Made by a program: the position numbers and the translations under genes. The notes beneath the pieces were generated by a model. That model was not told the origin of the DNA. It saw only the letters and a program-made list of their open reading frames with translations, and searched no databases. Positions 2,400-60,381 of a stretch of DNA of 64,000 bases are shown here, piece after piece. Numbering within the stretch: the stretch's first letter is position 1; each line of letters opens with the position of its first letter. The DNA lies in contig NW_003314296.1 of NCBI RefSeq assembly GCF_000143415.4, positions 1,706,966-1,770,965 of the forward strand, in the 5' to 3' direction. The stretch is from Selaginella moellendorffii. Its lineage: Eukaryota > Plantae > Lycopodiophyta.

Positions 2400-3930
2400 C
2401 TTTGCGTGTGGACGGAGCATCGATGGTGTGCAAGGAATCGGCGAGGTAGCGCTTCCAATATCGCTGGACGGCGCCTTTACGCTCCAGGAAGCGCCGCCGT
2501 ATGGGCTTGGGAATCGGACTCTGGTCGACACAGCCGTGCGAAGAGCTTGGCAGATCGATGGTGGCAAAGTCTTGTCGCATTTTTCCAGCCACACTGTCCA
2601 AGCCGTCGCTGCTATTGCTGTTCGTGGCTTGGGGATGGATCCGATTTGTGCAAGCTGCTGGTTTACGAATCAGGTGGGAAACACATATTATCCATTTCCT
2701 CTCTTTCCTCGTACTCTTTCGTTGTTTGCGTTTTTTCTTGGCTAGTCTTCACTCTATTTTACGTCCTTGTTTGATTTCTTACGTGTTTAGATTTCAGTGT
2801 TTCATAGCTAGTTTCTCTTTGCGTGGGTCTTTCTTATACTTGGTAGAAGGAATCTGATCTTGTTCTTTCACAAGATGGACAGTTCAAGCTACACCGAGAC
2901 ATCGAGAAGGAGCCTGGCATGTTTGCCACTCTCATACTCCAGCTCCCTGCATGGTTGCCAGGGAGGTGCTCTCGTGGTTCAGCATGGCAACCTCACTTTG
3001 ACGCTGGCTTCAAGGACACCGTCTTCTTTGCCGACTGCGAGCATGAAATCCAGCCAGTGAGACGAGGAAGGTGTGCGTGCATTTCAACCTGGTACGCAAG
3101 ACGAACGTTAGATCCAACAGAGCTCTGTGCGAAGTTAGTACCGCGACTGTGCTACGAGTGAAGTCATCTCTCGCACCTTAGATCCAGGATGCAAATTCGT
3201 CGTTAGAGAAGTTGGTCTTTTGTGTACACGGAGACAAATCTTTGCTTCTCTGGACTTAAAAGATCAAGACAGGCTGGTGGTGGAGCTCCTAGGAAACGTA
3301 CCGGTACTGCAGTGCTGCTGTGGTGTTTTGGCAGAAACGCAAGAGCATCGAGCTCGTTTGCCGGGGCAGGACTTGAAGGAGCTCTGGACATGGTGGAGTG
3401 GAGGGAGCTTCGGACTTCTCGGCTTGGCTCATATATCTAGTTAAGTACTATATTGCGGATATGAGCTCCTACGATCACTACAGGAGGAACGGAAACTTTT
3501 GCCGCTTGATCAAGCTTTGCCTTGACTCGGGTGATTCCAACTAAGTTTATCGGCTGATCGAGGTGCTGGGACAGGAAAGAAGCTCCCACAATCACTACAC
3601 GAGATATCTTTTGAAGGGATCAAGTCCGTTAAGGTTGCAAAGGTGGTTGCTCAAGCCCCCAAGTTTCTGGGATGGGATGCCCCGAGAGATCTCGTTTTGA
3701 AGCTTCTCCGGAGCTAGACCAGTTCGTGTTCTTCTGCCGTAATCTCGATAGCTGAGATGCTCTTCGCCCTGAGGCTGCACGATCAAATTCCGTTCTTCAT
3801 CGAGTAGAAAGCTGGAACGGGAGATGTTTGCAAGCTGCTCATCAACCTCTGGAAGCAAGACGCTGCTCAACGCGTCCGTTGGAAGAACGATACTTACCTC
3901 TATCCGAAGCTTTGCGGGGTGGTCACAACC
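2400..3930 (+). pseudogene. Degenerate 2OG-Fe(II) dioxygenase (P4H-like) domain gene, copy 1
   Basis: Frame-broken peptides: GIGEVALPIS..APPYGLGNRTLVDTAVRRAWQID, LCKLLVYESGG, FKLHRDIEKEPGMFATLILQLP (HxD at 2892), GGALVVQHG, FFADCEHEIQPVRRG (distal His), YTETNLCFSGLK. Confidence 0.75.
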
Positions 3931-4821
3931 ACGAGAAGAAAGTTTGTATCTCGTCAGATGAAATCCAAAGAAGAAATCTTGTTAGGGCTACAAGATCACC
4001 AAAAGAAAATCTACCAGCATTGATCCTGGAAGAAATCCAGCGTTTCCAGGAGGCGCGCTATGGCCCGGAATGGTTTAGGGCTTAGCCTTGTCTGGTCTGC
4101 CTGCCATGGCAAGAAACATTGCGAAAAAGATGCTGTGCAATTGGGCTTATACTGAAAGTTGCAGCTTTAGCGGACAAACAGCACTAGATCACTCTATCAA
4201 AGACTGGTGTCCCAGTTAAACTGAGGCTATTTCAGGGTTAATGTACACAATGATGTTTTTTCATCCCCAACATGCACTGTAAGCATTCAATAGCTTGAAG
4301 TTCTTCCTTCAATTCACGTGAACTGAAGGATAAACTTCACTGGCTGAAGCCTTGGAGGTTAAAGTATATAAAATAATAAAAAAGAATATACAATATCAAA
4401 ATAATCTTGATTTTGAAATTCTAGCCACTACTTAAACCCATCTTCCTAGCTAGAAGTACGTGATGCAAACCAGTATTAACAGCGTCTGGATGAAGAACAC
4501 TCCCCATGAGTGTTTCCTTCTTGTCCGAGCAAATCAATCAAGCTGAGAAAGAACTATTATAATCTGTCAGCTAGTGATGCTAAATTCTCGTGATATAATT
4601 TAACATCGACAATTCTCCTGAATAAGTCGTATTTCAAAGAGCTATAATTTGTAAACTCGTGATATACTTTACCATCACTAGCCCTTGACAAATTCTCCTG
4701 AATAAGTCATATAAGTCAAACAAGCCGGCCTGAGATGCGCGTCACAGGAAATTTTCCGCAGTTTCCAATATAAATGATTACATCTTCTTCCTGCAATTCT
4801 CAAATACAATTCTTCGAGTTC

Positions 4822-7674
<2,853 letters not shown>

Positions 7675-7809
7675 AATTTTGAAACATGTGTTCTGGTAGA
7701 TTTTTTGCCTCGGAGGCTCATGCAAAAATTTCCAGACCATGGATGCCAACTCCAACTCAAAGAATTTAGGGTTCTAAGGCCCAGATGGTCGATGCGAGAA
7801 GCCGCAGGG

Positions 7810-9170
7810 ATCTTTGCGTGTGGAGGGAGCATCGATGGTCACCTCCCGCTCCCGGCGAGGTAGCGCTTCCAATATCGCTGGACGGCGCCTTTACGCTCCA
7901 GGAAGCGCCGCCGTATGGGCTTGGGAATCGGACTCTGGTCGACACGGCAGATCGATTTTTCCAGCCACACTGTCCAAGCCGTCGCTGCTATTGCTGTTCG
8001 TGGCTTGGGGATGGATCCGATTTGTACAAGCTGCTGGTTTGCGAATCAGGGGAAACACATATTATACTCTTTCGTTGTTTGCGTTTTCTCTTGGCTAGTC
8101 TTCGCTCTATTTTACGTCCTTGTTTTATCTAGTTAAGTACTATATTGCGGATAGGAGCTCCTACGATCACTACAGGAGGAGCGGAAACTTTTGCCCTTGA
8201 TCAAGATCAAGCTTTGCCTTGACTCGGGTGATTCCAACTAAGTTTATCTGCTGATCGAGGTGCTGGGACAGGAAAAAAGCTCCCACAATCACATATCTTT
8301 TGAAGGGATCGATCAAGTCCGTTAAGGTTGCAAAGGTGGTTGCTTGAGCCCCCAAGTTTCTGGGATGGGATGCCCCGAGAGATCTCGTTTTGAAGCTTCT
8401 CCGGAGCTAGAGCTGCTCGCGTGATGGAGTGCGTGGCTGGGAGGTCTCTGGGACGTGGATGAGTTTGCCCAGCCATGCAATTCCTTCTGAGGCTGCACGA
8501 TCAAATTCCACCCTTCGTCGAATAGAAAGCTTCTGGAAGCAAGACGCTGCTCAACGCGTCTGTTGGACGAACGATACTTAACTCTATCCAAAGCTTTGCG
8601 GGGTGGTCACAACCAGAGACCTGAAGGTGGCAGAGCTCGCAAGCAACGTGATGAACGTGTTTTTATGGCTGGACGACGCCACAATGCTGGGGAGCTTCAT
8701 ACTCAATCTCAAGAGCCAGAAGCTCAAGGACTTTGTGGCGAAAGTTTTCCGGGATGGAGGCATCTGGTATCGATCAAAGGGAAGTGTGCTCTTTGCGACA
8801 TAGCCCAGGAGAGGATCAACGAGCTCTCGAAGGTGCAGAAGCCGGATGCGCACAGGTGGTGTGGCAACGCTTCCGGGTCATCCCGAGGTGGAGGCGTTTC
8901 TCCGGGGTCCCCAAGAGACGTTCACAGGTCCCAGGCGCGAAGCTTTGCTAGCAGCTACTTCGATGGGAAGTTTAGGAGCGGCTTCAGTGCAAAGCATAGG
9001 CTTCCTTCTGATACTCGGAATGCGTATGCTGAGATGAGGAAGGTGTACACGAATGGACAGACGGAGCTGAGGCTCCTTCAGCAACGCATTTAAGAGGTGA
9101 AGATTGGCAAGAGGAAAGCTAGCGCACGCGCTAGCTCATAAAAGAGTGTGTGGTCAAAACTGGCGAGGCC
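7810..9170 (+). pseudogene. 2OG-Fe(II) oxygenase gene remnant, copy 2 (N-terminal piece plus C-terminal region; catalytic core deleted)
   Basis: Near-identical to 2400-2770 and 3440-3930, then continues with VVTTRDLKVAELASN..KVFRDGG..ATLPGHPEVEAFLRGPQETFT..ARSFASSYFDG; frameshifts. Confidence 0.65.
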
Positions 9171-54100: not shown

Positions 54101-56533
54101 ATGCTGCATTGCGCAGGATGTGGAAGCTCCTGCTTCTTCCAATCCCAGCGACGCCCTCCAGGTATGCTGCAGGGCAGAGATTACAGGAGAATGCAGGCCA
54201 GAAAGATTGGCCGGGCAGGGTCTAGCGCCATTGTTTTGGCATCCAAGAACAAATCCAGGAAGAAGAATGTGGAGGACGATGTCGCTGCATATACGACGGC
54301 TGCGTTGCCTCTGCTAGAGGAGTATGCTGCCGGATACAGCGTGGCTGTGCTAGAGAAGAAGAAAGATTTGTCATCCAATCTGGGAGCAAAGGAAACTTTG
54401 CAGCGTGAGAAATCTTCTTCCAAGAAATCCTCGCTGGAAGAGTTTCTCAAAGGGAAAGTTCGACCATTGGACGAGGACGAAGAGAAAGAAGAGAAGGAAG
54501 ACGAGAGAGTCGAAGTTTGGGAAGGCGACTTGGGAAGCCCAATGACCGCCGAGGAGGAGCGCAAGCTACTGGCTGAAGCTGAGAAGGAGCTCTCGGAGCT
54601 CAGGAAGATGCATGGAGAGCGTTCCATTTTTGAGAATCGCTCGAAGCTTGGGATCGAAGAGGACGACGATGACGACCGCGTGGAAGTTTGGAAGGGAGAT
54701 AAGATGGAAGTCTGGAACGAAGAGGAGGACTCTTCCACAGATGTTTCTACGAGTGACAAGGAAGATCGAGCAGGAAACAAGAAAGGCGTGCCTGCTGTGA
54801 TGAGGTGCTTCGATCGAGCAAAGATTTACGTGAAAGCTGGGGATGGTGGCAATGGCGAGGTGGCCTTTCGAAGAGAAAAATACATCCCTCACGGTGGTCC
54901 ATCGGGTGGTAATGGCGGACGAGGTGGAAACATATACATCGAGGTTGATCCATCGCTCAACTCGCTGCTGTGCTTCCGGAAGAGCGTGCATTTTCGTGCC
55001 GGACGCGGCAGCCACGGCCTTGGCAAGTCCCAGGATGGAGCTTTTGGAGACGACTGCGTCGTGAAAGTCCCGCCTGGAACAGTGGTGAGAGACGCGAAGA
55101 ATTCAGAGACGCTACTCCTGGAGATGACAAAAGCTGGACACAGGGAATTGCTGCTTCCGGGAGGCCGTGGTGGCCGTGGAAATGCTGCGTTCAAGTCGGC
55201 GAAGAACAAGACTCCTCAGCTGGCGGAGCGAGGCGAGCAAGGAGCCGAAATGTTGGTTCTCAATCCCCTCCCTTCAAGCGTGATGGTTTGTTCTTCAGTT
55301 TTTTTTTTTTTTGTGTTCTTCCTGTCTTGATTTGTTTCTCTCGACTTTCTCTGATCTTTTGAGTTGTGATCTTTCCAGGTGGGTCGATCTGGAGCTTAAA
55401 CTTGTGGCAGACGTGGGAATTATAGGTGTTCCAAACGCTGGAAAGAGCACGCTACTAAGTGCTATCAGTGCTGCTCGTCCCGCCATTGCTGCATATCCAT
55501 TCACGACACTACTACCCAACCTTGGAGTGGTGTCGCTGGACTTCGATGCAACGATGGTTATAGCGGACTTGCCCGGGCTTCTCGAAGGTGCTCACGCTGG
55601 ATACGGCCTCGGTCACGAGTTTTTACGCCACACTGAGCGCTGTCGAGTCCTGGTAAGCTTTTTCTTTTAAACTTTCCTGCGTGCTAAAAGTTTCTTTGGA
55701 AAACCAGATTCATGTTATAGACGGTACGAGTCCACAGCCAGAATTCGAGTACGATGCAGTGCGACTGGAGCTGGAACTGTTTGATCCTCGCCTTTGCTCC
55801 AAACCATCCATTGTTGCTTTCAACAAGATGGATGTCCCAGAGGCTGCTGAACGCTGGGAAAGTTTCCGGAAAGCTATGGAGTCTCGTGGAGTGGAGGTTC
55901 GTTCCATGAGCGCCGCAACCATGGAGGGCACATTGCAAGTTGTGCGTCATGCGTATAAGCTTCTACAGACAGCCCCAGTTGGTAAGTATGAAACACTACT
56001 TTTAACTCGACTGTGAAACTCTTTCTCTACTATCCTTGCAGAAGAACCCGTGTCGATCTCGAACGACGTAGCTTCGATGGTGAAAAAGGAGCGAAGTAGT
56101 CCCATTGGAGAATTTAAGGTGGACGTCGACCCAGAATCAGACCTGTGGCACATTTACGGTGCTGGTGTGGAGCGCTTCACGCAAATGACTAACTGGGAGT
56201 AAGCTTACATCTTTTTTATTCCCATTCTTTCGAGCATTACAGTTCTTACACGACTCGCAGGTATTTCGAGTCCTTGCAACGATTCGAGCGGGTCTTGGAA
56301 TGCAGCGGCATAAATGCCGAGCTAAAGAGTAGAGGAATTCACGAAGGAGACAAAGTTGCGATCGGAGATGTACGTTAAATTCACACTCTTTGTTCTGTGC
56401 TATGAGCTCACTGTTTGTTTTTCTTTTTTCTTCGAACTTACAGCTAGTTTTCACTTGGCACGATTCCAATGATATTGCAAATGTGGGGACTTGGAGACGC
56501 GGCCAGAGAGGCTCAAAGAGTTGGCCACACTGA
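54101..56533 (+). CDS. OBGC: Chloroplast-type Obg/CgtA GTPase (ObgC-like)
   Basis: Exons ~54101-55251, 55379-55652, 55708-55981, 56042-56198, 56261-56369, 56444-56533. Acidic N-terminal extension; Gly-rich Obg fold [28 protein letters not shown]; G1 GVPNAGKS, G2 YPFTT, G3 DLPG, G4 NKMD; C-terminal OCT domain ([12 protein letters not shown]). Confidence 0.95.
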
Positions 56534-56641
56534 TGCCTCGTTTGTACAAAAGGTGATATTTTTATCTACAATCTTTCGCTTCTCATCTGTGCGTTCCAGA
56601 GAGACATAAAAGGCCTGGTGGTTTAGGTTTTTGCAGCGAGA

Positions 56642-59089
56642 ATGGCTACCAAAGCGGTGTTAACATTTGGAAGATACAAAGGCCAGCCTCTCGGTTCTCT
56701 TCCAGCGAACTATCTGCAATGGATGACACAGGAGCTAGACAACCACTGGAATGGCTTGGCAAGGCAAGTTCTATCAGAAAGAAAAGAAGGAGAAAGCTCG
56801 AGCACTCAAGAAGGTGGCAGCAACGTTTCTCCTCCGCAGAGCTCTCGCAAAGTCGGATCCATGGTTCTCACTTTCGGGAAGTACAAAGGCCAAGCGCTGG
56901 GCTCTCTCCCGGACGTGTACCTGGAATGGATGGCGAACAACATGCACACACACTGGGGGAGACACGCGAGAGAGTTTCTGGATAGCAAGCACGGTGGTGC
57001 TCGAGAAGTTCTCATCGCCCAAGAACAGGATGGATCGATCGCGCTGAAGAAGCAGATCCTGGCTTGTCAAGAGAGGAGAGACCTCGAGGAAGCCAAGCGG
57101 ATCCACGCGCGGGTGAAAGCCAGCGCCTATCGCAACGACCGATACATCGCCAATCTTCTCATGGACATGTTTGGAGCTTGCGGGAGCGCGGAGACGGCGC
57201 TGGAGATCTTTGACAAGATCCAGGCGCCCAACATCTTCTCCTGGAACATCATCCTCAAGGTTGTCACGCAGAAGAATGCATGCGATCCAGAGGCGTGGAA
57301 GATTTTCGAGAAGATCCCGGAGAAGGAGAAGAATGCCGTGTCGTGGAACATCATGCTCGCCGCGCTCGCGGCCGAGAAGGGGAATTTGCGCAAAGTGGAG
57401 GAGTTTTTCTACGAGAGGATGCCCGTCAAGGATGTGTTCTCCTGGACTACGCTGCTCAATGCCTACATAACAAATGGGCGGTTTGACAAGGCCAGGGAGA
57501 TCTTTGCGAGCCTTGATGACGAGAATGTAAACGCCGCTACGTGGAACACGATGATAGAAGGATATGCCCAGGCAGGGGATATGCTGCAAGCCAGAAAAAT
57601 GTTCGATAGCATGCCCGAAAAGAGCGTTGTGTCGTGGAATTTGATGATAGCAGCCTATGGAAAGATACATAATGTGGGAGAAGCAAGAAACCTGTTTGAA
57701 AAAGTGAAGGAGAAAAACCAGGTGACTTGGAATGCGATGCTTGCTGTATATGCCCAGAACGGGCATCTGGAGGAAGCAAAAACCTTGTTTGCTGAGATCC
57801 CAAAGAAAGATGGCGCTTCGTGGACGTGTTTGCTGCAAGCACACTGCCATGCAGGGACAACCCATGATTCGGAGGAGATCCTGCAGAAGATGCCGTTTGC
57901 AAAGACTATTGTGCACTGGACGATGCTGCTGGATGCCCATGCAAAGGCCGGGAATCTCGATCGAGCGAGGGAAGTTTACGACCAAATGCCGGATCCGGAT
58001 GCGATCGCGGCGAACGCCATGCTCGCCGCGTATGCACACAGAGGATACATGCACGAGGCAAATGCGCTGTTCGAGCAAGTTGGAGACAAAGTTGACGCCG
58101 CGACGAAGAACATCATGATCCTGGCGCATGGATCGTCCGGGAACTTGGAGGCATCCAAGCGACTATTCGACGAGATTATCGAGAGAGATCTCTACTCGTG
58201 GTCGTCGCTCATGCGGGCGTTCTCCTTGAGCAGCATGAACGAGGACGCGATTCATCTCTTTCGTTGCATGCTCGTCGAGGGCTTTGCTCCAAACGAAGTG
58301 ATTCTCCTCGTCTACGCGACCGCTGCGTGTGGGCGTGCGAGCTCGCTGGACGATTCCCGGAGCTTCTTTGCAAACATGCTTCCGGACTATGGAGTCTCTC
58401 CCGGCCTAGATCACTACGACTGCATGGTTGGAGCTTTCGGAGCCGCGAAGAAGATGGAAGAAGCAAGAGAGCTCATTGATAGCATGCCTTTCGAAGCTGA
58501 TGCTCAAGTGTGGATGACTCTACTCGCTTGCTGCCGGAGGCACTTGGACGCGGAGAATGGCAAGCTTTGCGCGGACAGATTGTTTGTCTTGGATCCAGAG
58601 AACGTTTCACCGTACAAGATCCTCGCGGAGATCTACAGCCAAACCGGGAGAGAGAAAGACATTGCTGGATTGAAGAAGATGGTGAGAGACAAAGGTCTCC
58701 ACAAGCTCGAGGCCGAGAGCCTGATCCAGATCGATGGCATCACGCACAAGTTTCGAGTGGGAGACACCGCGCATCCGAGCATCAAGAAAGTTCGCAAGGA
58801 AGTCGCGAGGTTGACGAAGCTGATGGAGAGAGATCATGGGTATAAACACGAGAACTTGGGATGGAGCGAGTGTGGCGGCGGTGTTCACAGCGAGAAGCTT
58901 GCGATCGCGTACGCGCTGTGCGAGAAGAGCCGCGAGATCTCGCTCGTGAATAACTTGAGGATGTGCGGTGATTGCCATACTTCTGCGAAGATGATCTCCA
59001 GCGTGGTGAAAAGGAAGATCACGGTACGTGACACGCAGAGGCTGCATGGTTTTGAGAATGGTGTTTGCTCTTGCGCGGATACCTGGTAA
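56642..59089 (+). CDS. PLS-class PPR protein with E and DYW-type deaminase domains (ends DTW) and two N-terminal DUF3820/ExoX-C-like repeats
   Basis: Intronless 815-aa ORF. Repeats LTFGRYKGQPLGSLPANYLQWM and LTFGKYKGQALGSLPDVYLEWM; tandem PPR motifs (VSWN.M..AY.); E domain HYDCMVGAFG..MPFEADAQVWMTLL; HSEKLA..NLRMCGDCH..CSCADTW. Confidence 0.93.
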   Translation: MATKAVLTFGRYKGQPLGSLPANYLQWMTQELDNHWNGLARQVLSERKEGESSSTQEGGSNVSPPQSSRKVGSMVLTFGKYKGQALGSLPDVYLEWMANNMHTHWGRHAREFLDSKHGGAREVLIAQEQDGSIALKKQILACQERRDLEEAKRIHARVKASAYRNDRYIANLLMDMFGACGSAETALEIFDKIQAPNIFSWNIILKVVTQKNACDPEAWKIFEKIPEKEKNAVSWNIMLAALAAEKGNLRKVEEFFYERMPVKDVFSWTTLLNAYITNGRFDKAREIFASLDDENVNAATWNTMIEGYAQAGDMLQARKMFDSMPEKSVVSWNLMIAAYGKIHNVGEARNLFEKVKEKNQVTWNAMLAVYAQNGHLEEAKTLFAEIPKKDGASWTCLLQAHCHAGTTHDSEEILQKMPFAKTIVHWTMLLDAHAKAGNLDRAREVYDQMPDPDAIAANAMLAAYAHRGYMHEANALFEQVGDKVDAATKNIMILAHGSSGNLEASKRLFDEIIERDLYSWSSLMRAFSLSSMNEDAIHLFRCMLVEGFAPNEVILLVYATAACGRASSLDDSRSFFANMLPDYGVSPGLDHYDCMVGAFGAAKKMEEARELIDSMPFEADAQVWMTLLACCRRHLDAENGKLCADRLFVLDPENVSPYKILAEIYSQTGREKDIAGLKKMVRDKGLHKLEAESLIQIDGITHKFRVGDTAHPSIKKVRKEVARLTKLMERDHGYKHENLGWSECGGGVHSEKLAIAYALCEKSREISLVNNLRMCGDCHTSAKMISSVVKRKITVRDTQRLHGFENGVCSCADTW

Positions 59090-59092
59090 GTT

Positions 59093-60163
59093 TTAGTCTA
59101 TTGCGGTTCCAGAGGTGGGAAGATCGCGATGGATCCATTCGTTAAATCCACCCTGGAGGTGGAAAACGTTTGTGAATCCTGCTTCCTGGAGTTCATATGC
59201 CGCTTTCAATGATCTGTAGGGAGAGTTTCTTTGTGAGAGTTTTTGACGCGAGATCGATGAGAGTACCTCGACTGACGTCCAAAGAAGCGCTCGGGATCCT
59301 TGAACTTCTTTGCTTTAGGCCCCGTTCTCTCGACGTACGTGAGGAGAGTTCCTCCAATGCTGCACAGAACGATTACTTTCTTGTTCTTGTCGCCGTTAAC
59401 AGCGTCGAGAGCTTTCTCCACGAATTCTGGGTTGCGCTCTGCCATGCAAGCTCTTTCAGTATTCTCTAGTTAGAAGCGAGGGGGAAATTTAACCTGTGCC
59501 AGAGAAGTTCGTAAGCAAGGCAAATCCCAGTCTCCTGCTCAACCAGACCAAAGCATAAGCAAAAACTCTTTGAGAAAAAAAAGAGAGTAGGAAACCTGGC
59601 ATTTGCTTTGAGATCGTTTCCTTGAATTTGTCGGAACAAGGGAGCGGACTTTGTTCCCTCACCATGCACCTGACAAAGAAGAAAAAATCGATCTCGTGCC
59701 GAGGAATGATCCAAAAAGAACCTTTTCGAAGGGTTGACACTCACGAACGTCAATAAGAACAGCGTCACCGCTCTTCATCATCTTGTATGCTTCATCGCAA
59801 TCGAGGCTCACCAGATTTCTCTCTGTTAGCTTTCGATGAATTTCTACAAAAGAAAGACATAGAACAAGAGAATCAATCGCTCGAAATTTCATAGCACTCA
59901 CCAATCCAAGCAGTGTACTTGAATGCGTCGTCAAACAGGGATCCAACGTAGCCATTCCGGGCGGCGACATCGGCCTTGAGCTTGTTGAGCTTGGCCTCCA
60001 TCGTGTTTTGCGACACGAATTTGTCGTAGAACCATCCCCGGCTGCTACTGACCTTGTTCGCCACGGGATCGCCATCGCGATCGCTTGCCCTAGCGCGTGT
60101 CCCCAAAACCTGATTTCGAGAAGGAAGAACTAGCGCTCGACTAGAAGAAAGCAATGGAGCCAT
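59093..60163 (-). CDS. Rhodanese-like domain protein, probably plastid-targeted (STR14-like)
   Basis: Multi-exon. Ser/Arg-rich N-terminus; AVLIDVRE, APLFRQIQG, FSGTERNPEF, VIVLCSIGGTL, GRQSRSLKAAYEL, GFTNVFHLQGGFNEW; TAA at 59095-59093. Confidence 0.88.
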
Positions 60164-60381
60164 TCATTTCACTCACTGGCGGAATATGCTAATTTTGAAA
60201 AATCTTCCAACAGAATATACTATTGTGGCGTGCTGGCAGAATATGCTGCAGACTTGACGGAATGTGTGTTAAGCTTATGGGGTAGAACCCTAAACATTCT
60301 CTTCGGGAAAAATGGCGGGATAGAGGAGCTGCGCAGCGACGCGCCTTGGATCGGCTGAAATATCCAAGATCATCCGCGGCG

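Follow-up and report, generated by a model that had tools for sequence, protein, structure and literature searches.

PPR-DYW proteins perform site-specific C-to-U RNA editing in plant organelles. They are viewed as self-contained editors, consisting of an RNA-reading array and a deaminase, and work is under way to engineer them into programmable RNA base editors. Members of the PLS class, such as Physcomitrium PPR56 and PPR65 and the At4g02750-type proteins, are the products of intronless nuclear genes and have tandem PPR motifs, E motifs and a C-terminal DYW domain with its HSE, CxDCH and H..CxC zinc sites. A second described system is the DUF3820 (QSregVF_b, PF12843) or ExoX-like_C (PF20600) domain of bacteria and phages, which forms a C-terminal tail on DNA enzymes. 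Here we describe a gene in which both are found. It lies in a 64,000-nucleotide (nt) stretch of the Selaginella moellendorffii genome (the window; contig NW_003314296.1), as an open reading frame (ORF) at 56642-59089 of the + strand. Its product shares the tandem PPR motifs, E motifs, C-terminal DYW domain, zinc sites and intronless gene of the known editors. Unlike them, it has no classical presequence: this editing-type PPR-DYW protein opens with two DUF3820/QSregVF_b copies at the site usually taken by a targeting peptide.

A PPR-E-DYW protein that opens with two DUF3820 domains

The ORF is a single open frame of 815 codons without introns, and its 815-residue product matches a public gene model exactly (GL377600.1:1763607-1766054 in GCA_000143415.2). 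The protein comprises two DUF3820 domains, a PPR array, E1/E2 motifs and a DYW domain; in the whole-protein Pfam scan, QSregVF_b (PF12843) scores 48.3 bits against a cutoff of 22, in two stretches. An earlier interpretation of the window, made from its letters and hereafter called the sequence-only reading, had proposed two tandem repeats of about 42 residues at the start of the ORF, joined by a Ser/Gly linker and fused in frame, without an intron, to a PPR-E-DYW protein. Each of these proposals held. Repeat 1 spans aa ~6-46 (56657-56779) and repeat 2 aa ~74-115 (56861-56986), both inside 56642-56990, and between them lies a Ser/Gly/Glu-rich linker (aa ~47-73; 56780-56860). We considered whether the repeats might constitute a separate small gene and rejected this, as the frame has no stop between the repeats and the PPR tract.

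The assignment of the repeats to the DUF3820/QSregVF_b domain, which the sequence-only reading had named together with the ExoX C-terminal-like domain, is supported by the Pfam profiles. Residues 1-123 alone match PF12843 with 54.4 bits (E 1.1e-14), and each repeat passes the cutoff of 22 by itself (28.2 bits for aa 1-55 and 29.6 bits for aa 66-123). The predicted membership in the DUF3820 family is thus far more than chance would produce. ExoX-like_C (PF20600) also exceeds its cutoff of 26.5 on aa 1-123, with 29.6 bits, although it falls below it on the whole protein (19.5 bits) and on the single repeats (19.0 and 22.1 bits); its alignment covers model positions 1-11 only, on the same residues as the PF12843 match. 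In NCBIfam, the didomain residues match the C-terminal tails of the epsilon/DnaQ-type and exonuclease X (ExoX) models. Identity between the two repeats is 56%. Both carry the family motif FG(K/R)YKG..LGSLP..YL.WM and, with it, the signature FGK(Y/H)KG ... (V/L)P..YL.W that is shared with the bacterial and phage domains. In an alignment of 52 family sequences, all relatives of the didomain, the near-invariant columns are G10, G14, Y24, W27, F78, G79, G83 and Y93.

An AlphaFold2 prediction of aa 1-125 has a mean pLDDT of 86. The predicted didomain consists of two separate compact units with pLDDT >90 (93-97 in repeat 1 and 93-96 in repeat 2), connected by poorly ordered residues ~51-70 (pLDDT 58-60), and the linker is accordingly predicted to be disordered. 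Each predicted unit comprises a short beta bridge, a turn and two helices (residues 22-31 and 35-52 in the first, 91-100 and 104-116 in the second). The first ten residues of the protein already lie inside the predicted fold, with a pLDDT of 93. The folded domain is predicted to begin at residue ~6, which leaves no space for a classical presequence, and no extension is found ahead of it, in keeping with the proposal that the repeats stand in place of a transit peptide. Residues 1-30 include no acidic residue and have a net charge of +3.

Searches of known structures with the didomain were uninformative. A sequence search against solved structures returned chance matches only (ryanodine receptor), and Foldseek found no match in the PDB at E<=0.001. 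The top hit of a wide VIA-align search was a 47-residue helical piece of myosin VI with a Z score of 5.8; we dropped this fold assignment, as that score is within the tool's stated noise range.

The remainder of the protein was expected from the sequence-only reading to be a full PLS-E-DYW protein. The PPR, E and DYW parts are indeed all present, but the PPR motifs are mostly of the 31-aa S type and the DYW domain departs in some respects from the canonical form. The PPR array (aa ~168-623; 57143-58510) matches Pfam PPR PF01535 in ten stretches (E 1.3e-62), as well as PF13041 and PF12854, and has motif starts at aa 168, 199, 233, 266, 299, 330, 361, 392, 424, 455, 487 and 518. Rather than a regular P-L-S order, it shows about eleven consecutive S-type motifs of 31-33 aa, followed by P2-L2-S2-like and E motifs. 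The E motif region (PF20431, E 1.9e-9) lies at aa 634-689 (58541-58708), between the array and the DYW-type deaminase domain (aa ~690-815; 58709-59086; PF14432, E 8.9e-24), of which Pfam aligns model positions 25-93 only. The zinc and catalytic residues of the DYW domain are kept as HSE, CGDCH and H..CSC, and in a DYW alignment (A3) the columns H82-S83-E84, C108, C111-H112, H135, C142 and C144 are invariant. The closest full-length relatives are At4g02750-like proteins, at 25-33% identity, and a whole-protein search of the ESM Atlas returned generic PPR-DYW clusters only.

Transcription and the 5' leader

Transcript evidence came from four runs, each of a different study, whose assembled contigs were compared with 54800-60200; such contigs show neither transcript ends nor abundance. 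The neighbouring genes are an Obg-type GTPase gene upstream and a rhodanese gene downstream on the opposite strand, and because contigs skip the GT..AG introns of both, all four runs can be taken as RNA. A 2,935-nt contig (run X1, record 2) is colinear with the window over 56598-59532 and contains the whole ORF without a single internal joint. Continuity of the transcript across 56990-57100, the junction between repeats and PPR tract that the sequence-only reading had singled out for checking, is thereby established, the contigs being colinear there with no joints inside the ORF. A further contig (run X8, record 13) is spliced at a GT..AG intron of the + strand and continues for 955 nt into the ORF, which shows that the sense strand is transcribed through the repeats and on into the PPR tract.

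That intron is a 47-nt leader intron at 56553-56599 (+ strand; joint 56550>56598, where a cut shifted by +2 gives GT..AG), removed in runs X1 and X8 and still present in X5 and X6. On its 3' side, 18 nt before the ATG, the translation has an in-frame TAG stop (56624-56626, + strand; ..KGLVV*VFAARMATKAV..). As this stop lies downstream of the sole leader intron, the observed transcripts add no coding extension. An upstream coding exon, or a presequence spliced onto the repeats, was a candidate that we considered and ruled out on the basis of the TAG at 56624 and the lack of any joint at ~56636. None of the four RNA assemblies uses the 'ttttgcag' acceptor at about that position, which had been suggested to join an upstream exon.

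Where the runs depart from the window sequence, the differences look allelic. Among those listed within the ORF, 11 of 19 are synonymous, as are all three of those listed in the N-terminal region. In one contig (run X5, record 6) the PPR ORF follows on from the spliced exons of Obg, whose stop codon (TGA, ~56531) is 108 nt upstream of the PPR ATG. This joining of Obg and PPR sequences, over 56445-56641, could reflect read-through, bicistronic transcription or overlapping untranslated regions.

DUF3820 domains in other proteins

An exhaustive HMMER scan of aa 1-123 against 1.84 billion representatives (E<=0.001) yielded 132 matches. The bulk of them are short 'DUF3820 family' proteins of metagenomic or bacterial origin, some are fungal or from a dinoflagellate, and four clusters are PPR proteins. 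Many of the matches span both repeats, so that the tandem pair is common in the family. A search of the ESM Atlas by shape gave closest clusters that all carry PF12843 or PF20600; in these clusters the domain is fused to DEDDh exonucleases (RNase_T), SF2 helicases (Helicase_C/ResIII), the single-strand annealing proteins ERF and Sak, HD hydrolases and, in giant viruses, RNase H (RNase_H). An Atlas feature search with aa 1-123 gave no usable match. The HMMER matches and fusion partners agree with the earlier suggestion that the domain is mostly bacterial or phage-borne and attached to nucleic-acid enzymes. In E. coli, an ExoX fragment comprising residues 1-167, without the C-terminal tail, stays active; attempts to crystallise the full-length protein did not succeed (PMC3753628). 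By analogy, DUF3820 is a putative non-catalytic appendage of nucleic-acid enzymes. The window didomain resembles its bacterial and phage counterparts in signature, profile score, tandem arrangement and predicted shape. It differs from them in its partners, which are a PPR array and a cytidine deaminase instead of DNA enzymes, and in its N-terminal position.

Among the best matches of the individual repeats are also angiosperm proteins of ~250-290 aa, with ~50% identity per repeat. A search with one of these, from Impatiens (P0139), retrieved 305 proteins. The named ones among the best 120 of the 305 are all from angiosperms, and nearly all of these 120 are annotated as 'uncharacterized', with one labelled 'like AT1G51080'. 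In the AT1G51080-like proteins a Ser-rich, presequence-like N-terminus leads directly into one DUF3820 domain, and the C-terminal region is conserved as DPVY.DR.EWE ... FGWDN ... LLGTSKGGRIPR (last motif also given as GGRIPR). These proteins have a single DUF3820 domain and no PPR or DYW part, unlike the window protein, which has two repeats joined to PPR motifs and is without the AT1G51080-like C-terminal motifs. A literature search on AT1G51080 returned a single transcriptome paper naming the gene, and the family appears to be conserved yet uncharacterised. Automatic names of its members can mislead: 'golgin family A protein', 'Aspartate--tRNA ligase' and 'DNA directed RNA polymerase, 7 kDa subunit' all occur (P0139, P0136, P0141, P0242 and search matches).

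The PPR proteins among the HMMER matches show that the window gene has company. When the first 130 aa were compared with full-length proteins in a word-indexed search, nothing came back, which reflects the limited sensitivity of that search, as HMMER later found P0135 and others. This S. moellendorffii protein (P0135/P0253; XP_024516766, XP_024536929; 751 aa) has two PF12843 domains followed by PPR, E and DYW. It is encoded by the intact downstream copy of a tandem DUF3820-PPR-E-DYW pair (locus L006; GL377644.1:224773-237028, in which the copies lie at 3105-4894 and 5001-7256). The upstream copy, L006-A, carries a single repeat and is frameshifted near 3300-3590; the gene model called for it begins only at 3587. 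In both L006-A and P0135 the DUF3820 domain stands at the very start, with no N-terminal extension.

Two other S. moellendorffii loci hold decayed relatives. At L001 the whole Obg+PPR locus is duplicated, at ~92% identity (GL377606.1:159348-172061, about 5900-7900). Its PPR copy has lost the start codon, has its repeats in different frames and is missing ~860 bp of the PPR tract; the corresponding protein (P0239, XP_024540399, 237 aa; 'uncharacterized protein LOC9634162' in RefSeq) is a partly out-of-frame translation. At L002 a paralogue is fragmented (GL377579.1:972610-985792, at 6001-8688), with the E-DYW part in a separate ORF at 8014-8688. There, in P0144 (XP_024531158, 314 aa), a DYW end directly abuts the DUF3820 repeat and the PPR start of the fragmented paralogue.

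The remaining case, P0175/P0255 (783 aa), comes from ~3.4-kb transcript-like plant contigs (SRR32617110, SRR32617137 and SRR32617138). It has a 45-aa presequence-like extension, a degenerate repeat 1, an intact repeat 2, a canonical P-L-S array, E and DYW. In the PPR tract, identity is ~49% to Ginkgo proteins and 45% to a moss protein, so P0175 is probably not from Selaginella. The DYW matches of P0135 and P0175 are both fuller than that of the window protein, covering model positions 1-93. The DUF3820-PPR-DYW combination thus recurs in S. moellendorffii and in at least one other plant.

The N-terminal module shows 39-43% identity between paralogues, compared with 31-32% for the PPR tract; for the L002 copy the corresponding values are 63% and 52%. 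On these figures the module is conserved to no lesser degree than the PPR tract, which argues for constraint on the module. In a maximum-likelihood tree of 193 domain copies over 45 columns, the two window repeats pair with each other and are joined first by the L002 copy and then by the plant and P0175 domains, groupings that lack support.

The sequence-only reading had called the architecture unfamiliar. In one respect this stands: a literature search found no paper pairing DUF3820, QSregVF_b, PF12843 or ExoX-like_C with PPR and none that contains the motif, and the passages searched in Iyer et al. 2011 and in a 2026 kingdom-wide survey of editing factors (PMC13386178) make no mention of it. 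It is, however, not unique to the window gene, given its recurrence. DUF3820-PPR-DYW proteins are already in public databases, under generic PPR names.

Possible roles and genomic setting

We consider it probable that the window holds an expressed nuclear gene of the PPR-E-DYW editing type, rich in S motifs, to which a DUF3820 adaptor didomain has been added. As in characterised members, the PPR array would pick the RNA site and the DYW domain would deaminate the cytidine. The didomain would serve as a non-catalytic adaptor, with its two predicted mini-domains on a flexible linker, and may bind a partner protein or single-stranded nucleic acid. We infer such a binding role because the same domain is appended to exonucleases, helicases, ERF/Sak, HD hydrolases and RNase H, and because ExoX keeps its catalytic activity when the domain is absent. 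The likeliest source of the module is the plant's own AT1G51080-like single-domain family, or an ancestor common to both, and it would have spread by tandem and segmental duplication during the lycophyte expansion of PPR-DYW genes.

On this proposal, a natural PPR-DYW protein with an extra, conserved N-terminal module would be a lead to partners or recruitment mechanisms, with greatest relevance in the plant lineage that has the most extreme organellar editing. The phage and bacterial DNA-enzyme domain is moreover now linked to a conserved and unstudied plant family, and Arabidopsis AT1G51080 and the Selaginella fusions offer two tractable entry points to DUF3820 binding. We regard the relevance to the field of organellar RNA editing, and to that of the orphan DUF3820 domain, as moderate.

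Several observations weigh against the adaptor proposal or against parts of it. Within the DYW region, the PG box is degenerate, with EA at its core ('KLEAESLIQ' for 'K.PG.SWIE' in alignment A3), seven residues are deleted before HSE, and the C-terminus reads DTW instead of DYW, all of which set the window protein apart from the known PPR-E-DYW editors. PG-box substitutions in Physcomitrium PPR56 weaken editing to an extent that depends on the target (PMC10482289), so the deaminase activity of the window protein is uncertain. These deviations would lower confidence in activity and not in homology, as the family tolerates variants. The paralogues at L001, L002 and L006-A are decayed and repeat 1 of P0175 is degenerate; judging from these sequences, the module is not always maintained. 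The ORF may also ride partly on Obg read-through transcripts and be poorly translated. In addition, it is solely from domain co-occurrence that an adaptor role is suggested, and with no classical presequence an organellar location is uncertain. Finally, the 45-column tree does not separate a plant from a bacterial-didomain origin, so that the plant origin of the module is no more than suggested.

Of the other explanations, the one that survives best holds that the repeats are a relic that hitch-hiked when a duplicating PPR-DYW gene captured the 5' part of a DUF3820 gene for an organelle-targeted protein, and that they now have no role in the mature editing factor or act only as a non-canonical import signal. 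Capture of another gene's 5' part is a common route to targeting information, and the AT1G51080-like family has presequence-like, Ser-rich N-termini directly before its domain. P0175 fits this history, retaining its presequence-like 45-aa extension ahead of a decayed repeat 1, as do the Selaginella copies that are down to one repeat (L002 and L006-A) and the presequence-like composition of the first 30 residues of the window protein. However, the window gene and P0135 have no extension before the domain, and thus no captured presequence is left in them, while both of their repeats pass the Pfam cutoff and keep all the family-invariant residues. The repeats are also predicted to form compact folds from residue 1, and between paralogues of ~31% identity their conservation does not fall below that of the PPR tract. 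We therefore think a relic possible but doubtful.

The gene might instead be a decaying or neo-functionalised member of its family that is transcribed and is not an active C-to-U editor, in which case its architecture would be irrelevant to editing. This would accommodate the EA of the PG box, the deletion before HSE, the DTW end and the Pfam DYW match limited to positions 25-93. The close copies are pseudogene-like (L001 being startless and frameshifted, and L002 fragmented), and the gene follows the Obg stop by 108 nt, with RNA contigs joining the two. The genome has thousands of PPR genes, many of them likely redundant; a passage of the 2026 survey reports 3,861 for S. moellendorffii (PMC13386178). 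Against such inactivity, the 815-codon frame is intact, the zinc and catalytic residues are all invariant, and most of the listed allelic differences are synonymous. Transcripts of the gene are present in four independent studies, and P0135 and P0175 share the architecture with DYW matches that cover positions 1-93. An inactive copy is thus, in our view, rather unlikely.

A bolder extension of the adaptor proposal, which we hold to be improbable, is that the didomain tethers DYW deaminases to the organellar replication and recombination machinery or to single-stranded DNA. Editing might then take place at the nucleoid, co-transcriptionally or on DNA, or else the members without a presequence might be extra-organellar; the AT1G51080 family would be a factor of organellar nucleic-acid metabolism. 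That the protein acts in the cytosol or nucleus, with the didomain directing the deaminase to a non-organellar nucleic-acid process, is very improbable: the predicted fold from residue ~6 with no N-terminal extension, shared by P0135 and L006-A, would suit it, but P0175 has a presequence-like extension before the same module, the AT1G51080-like family looks organelle-targeted and, to our knowledge, all characterised PPR-DYW editing factors act in organelles.

Downstream of the ORF, RNA contigs of the rhodanese gene (minus strand, with CT..AC introns in 59213-59902) reach into the 3' part of the PPR ORF (58302-59532). The PPR and rhodanese genes are convergent, and their transcribed regions either overlap or were merged by unstranded assembly. 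The 64-kb window as a whole includes 821 N letters (an assembly gap) and has an overall G+C content of 42.5%.

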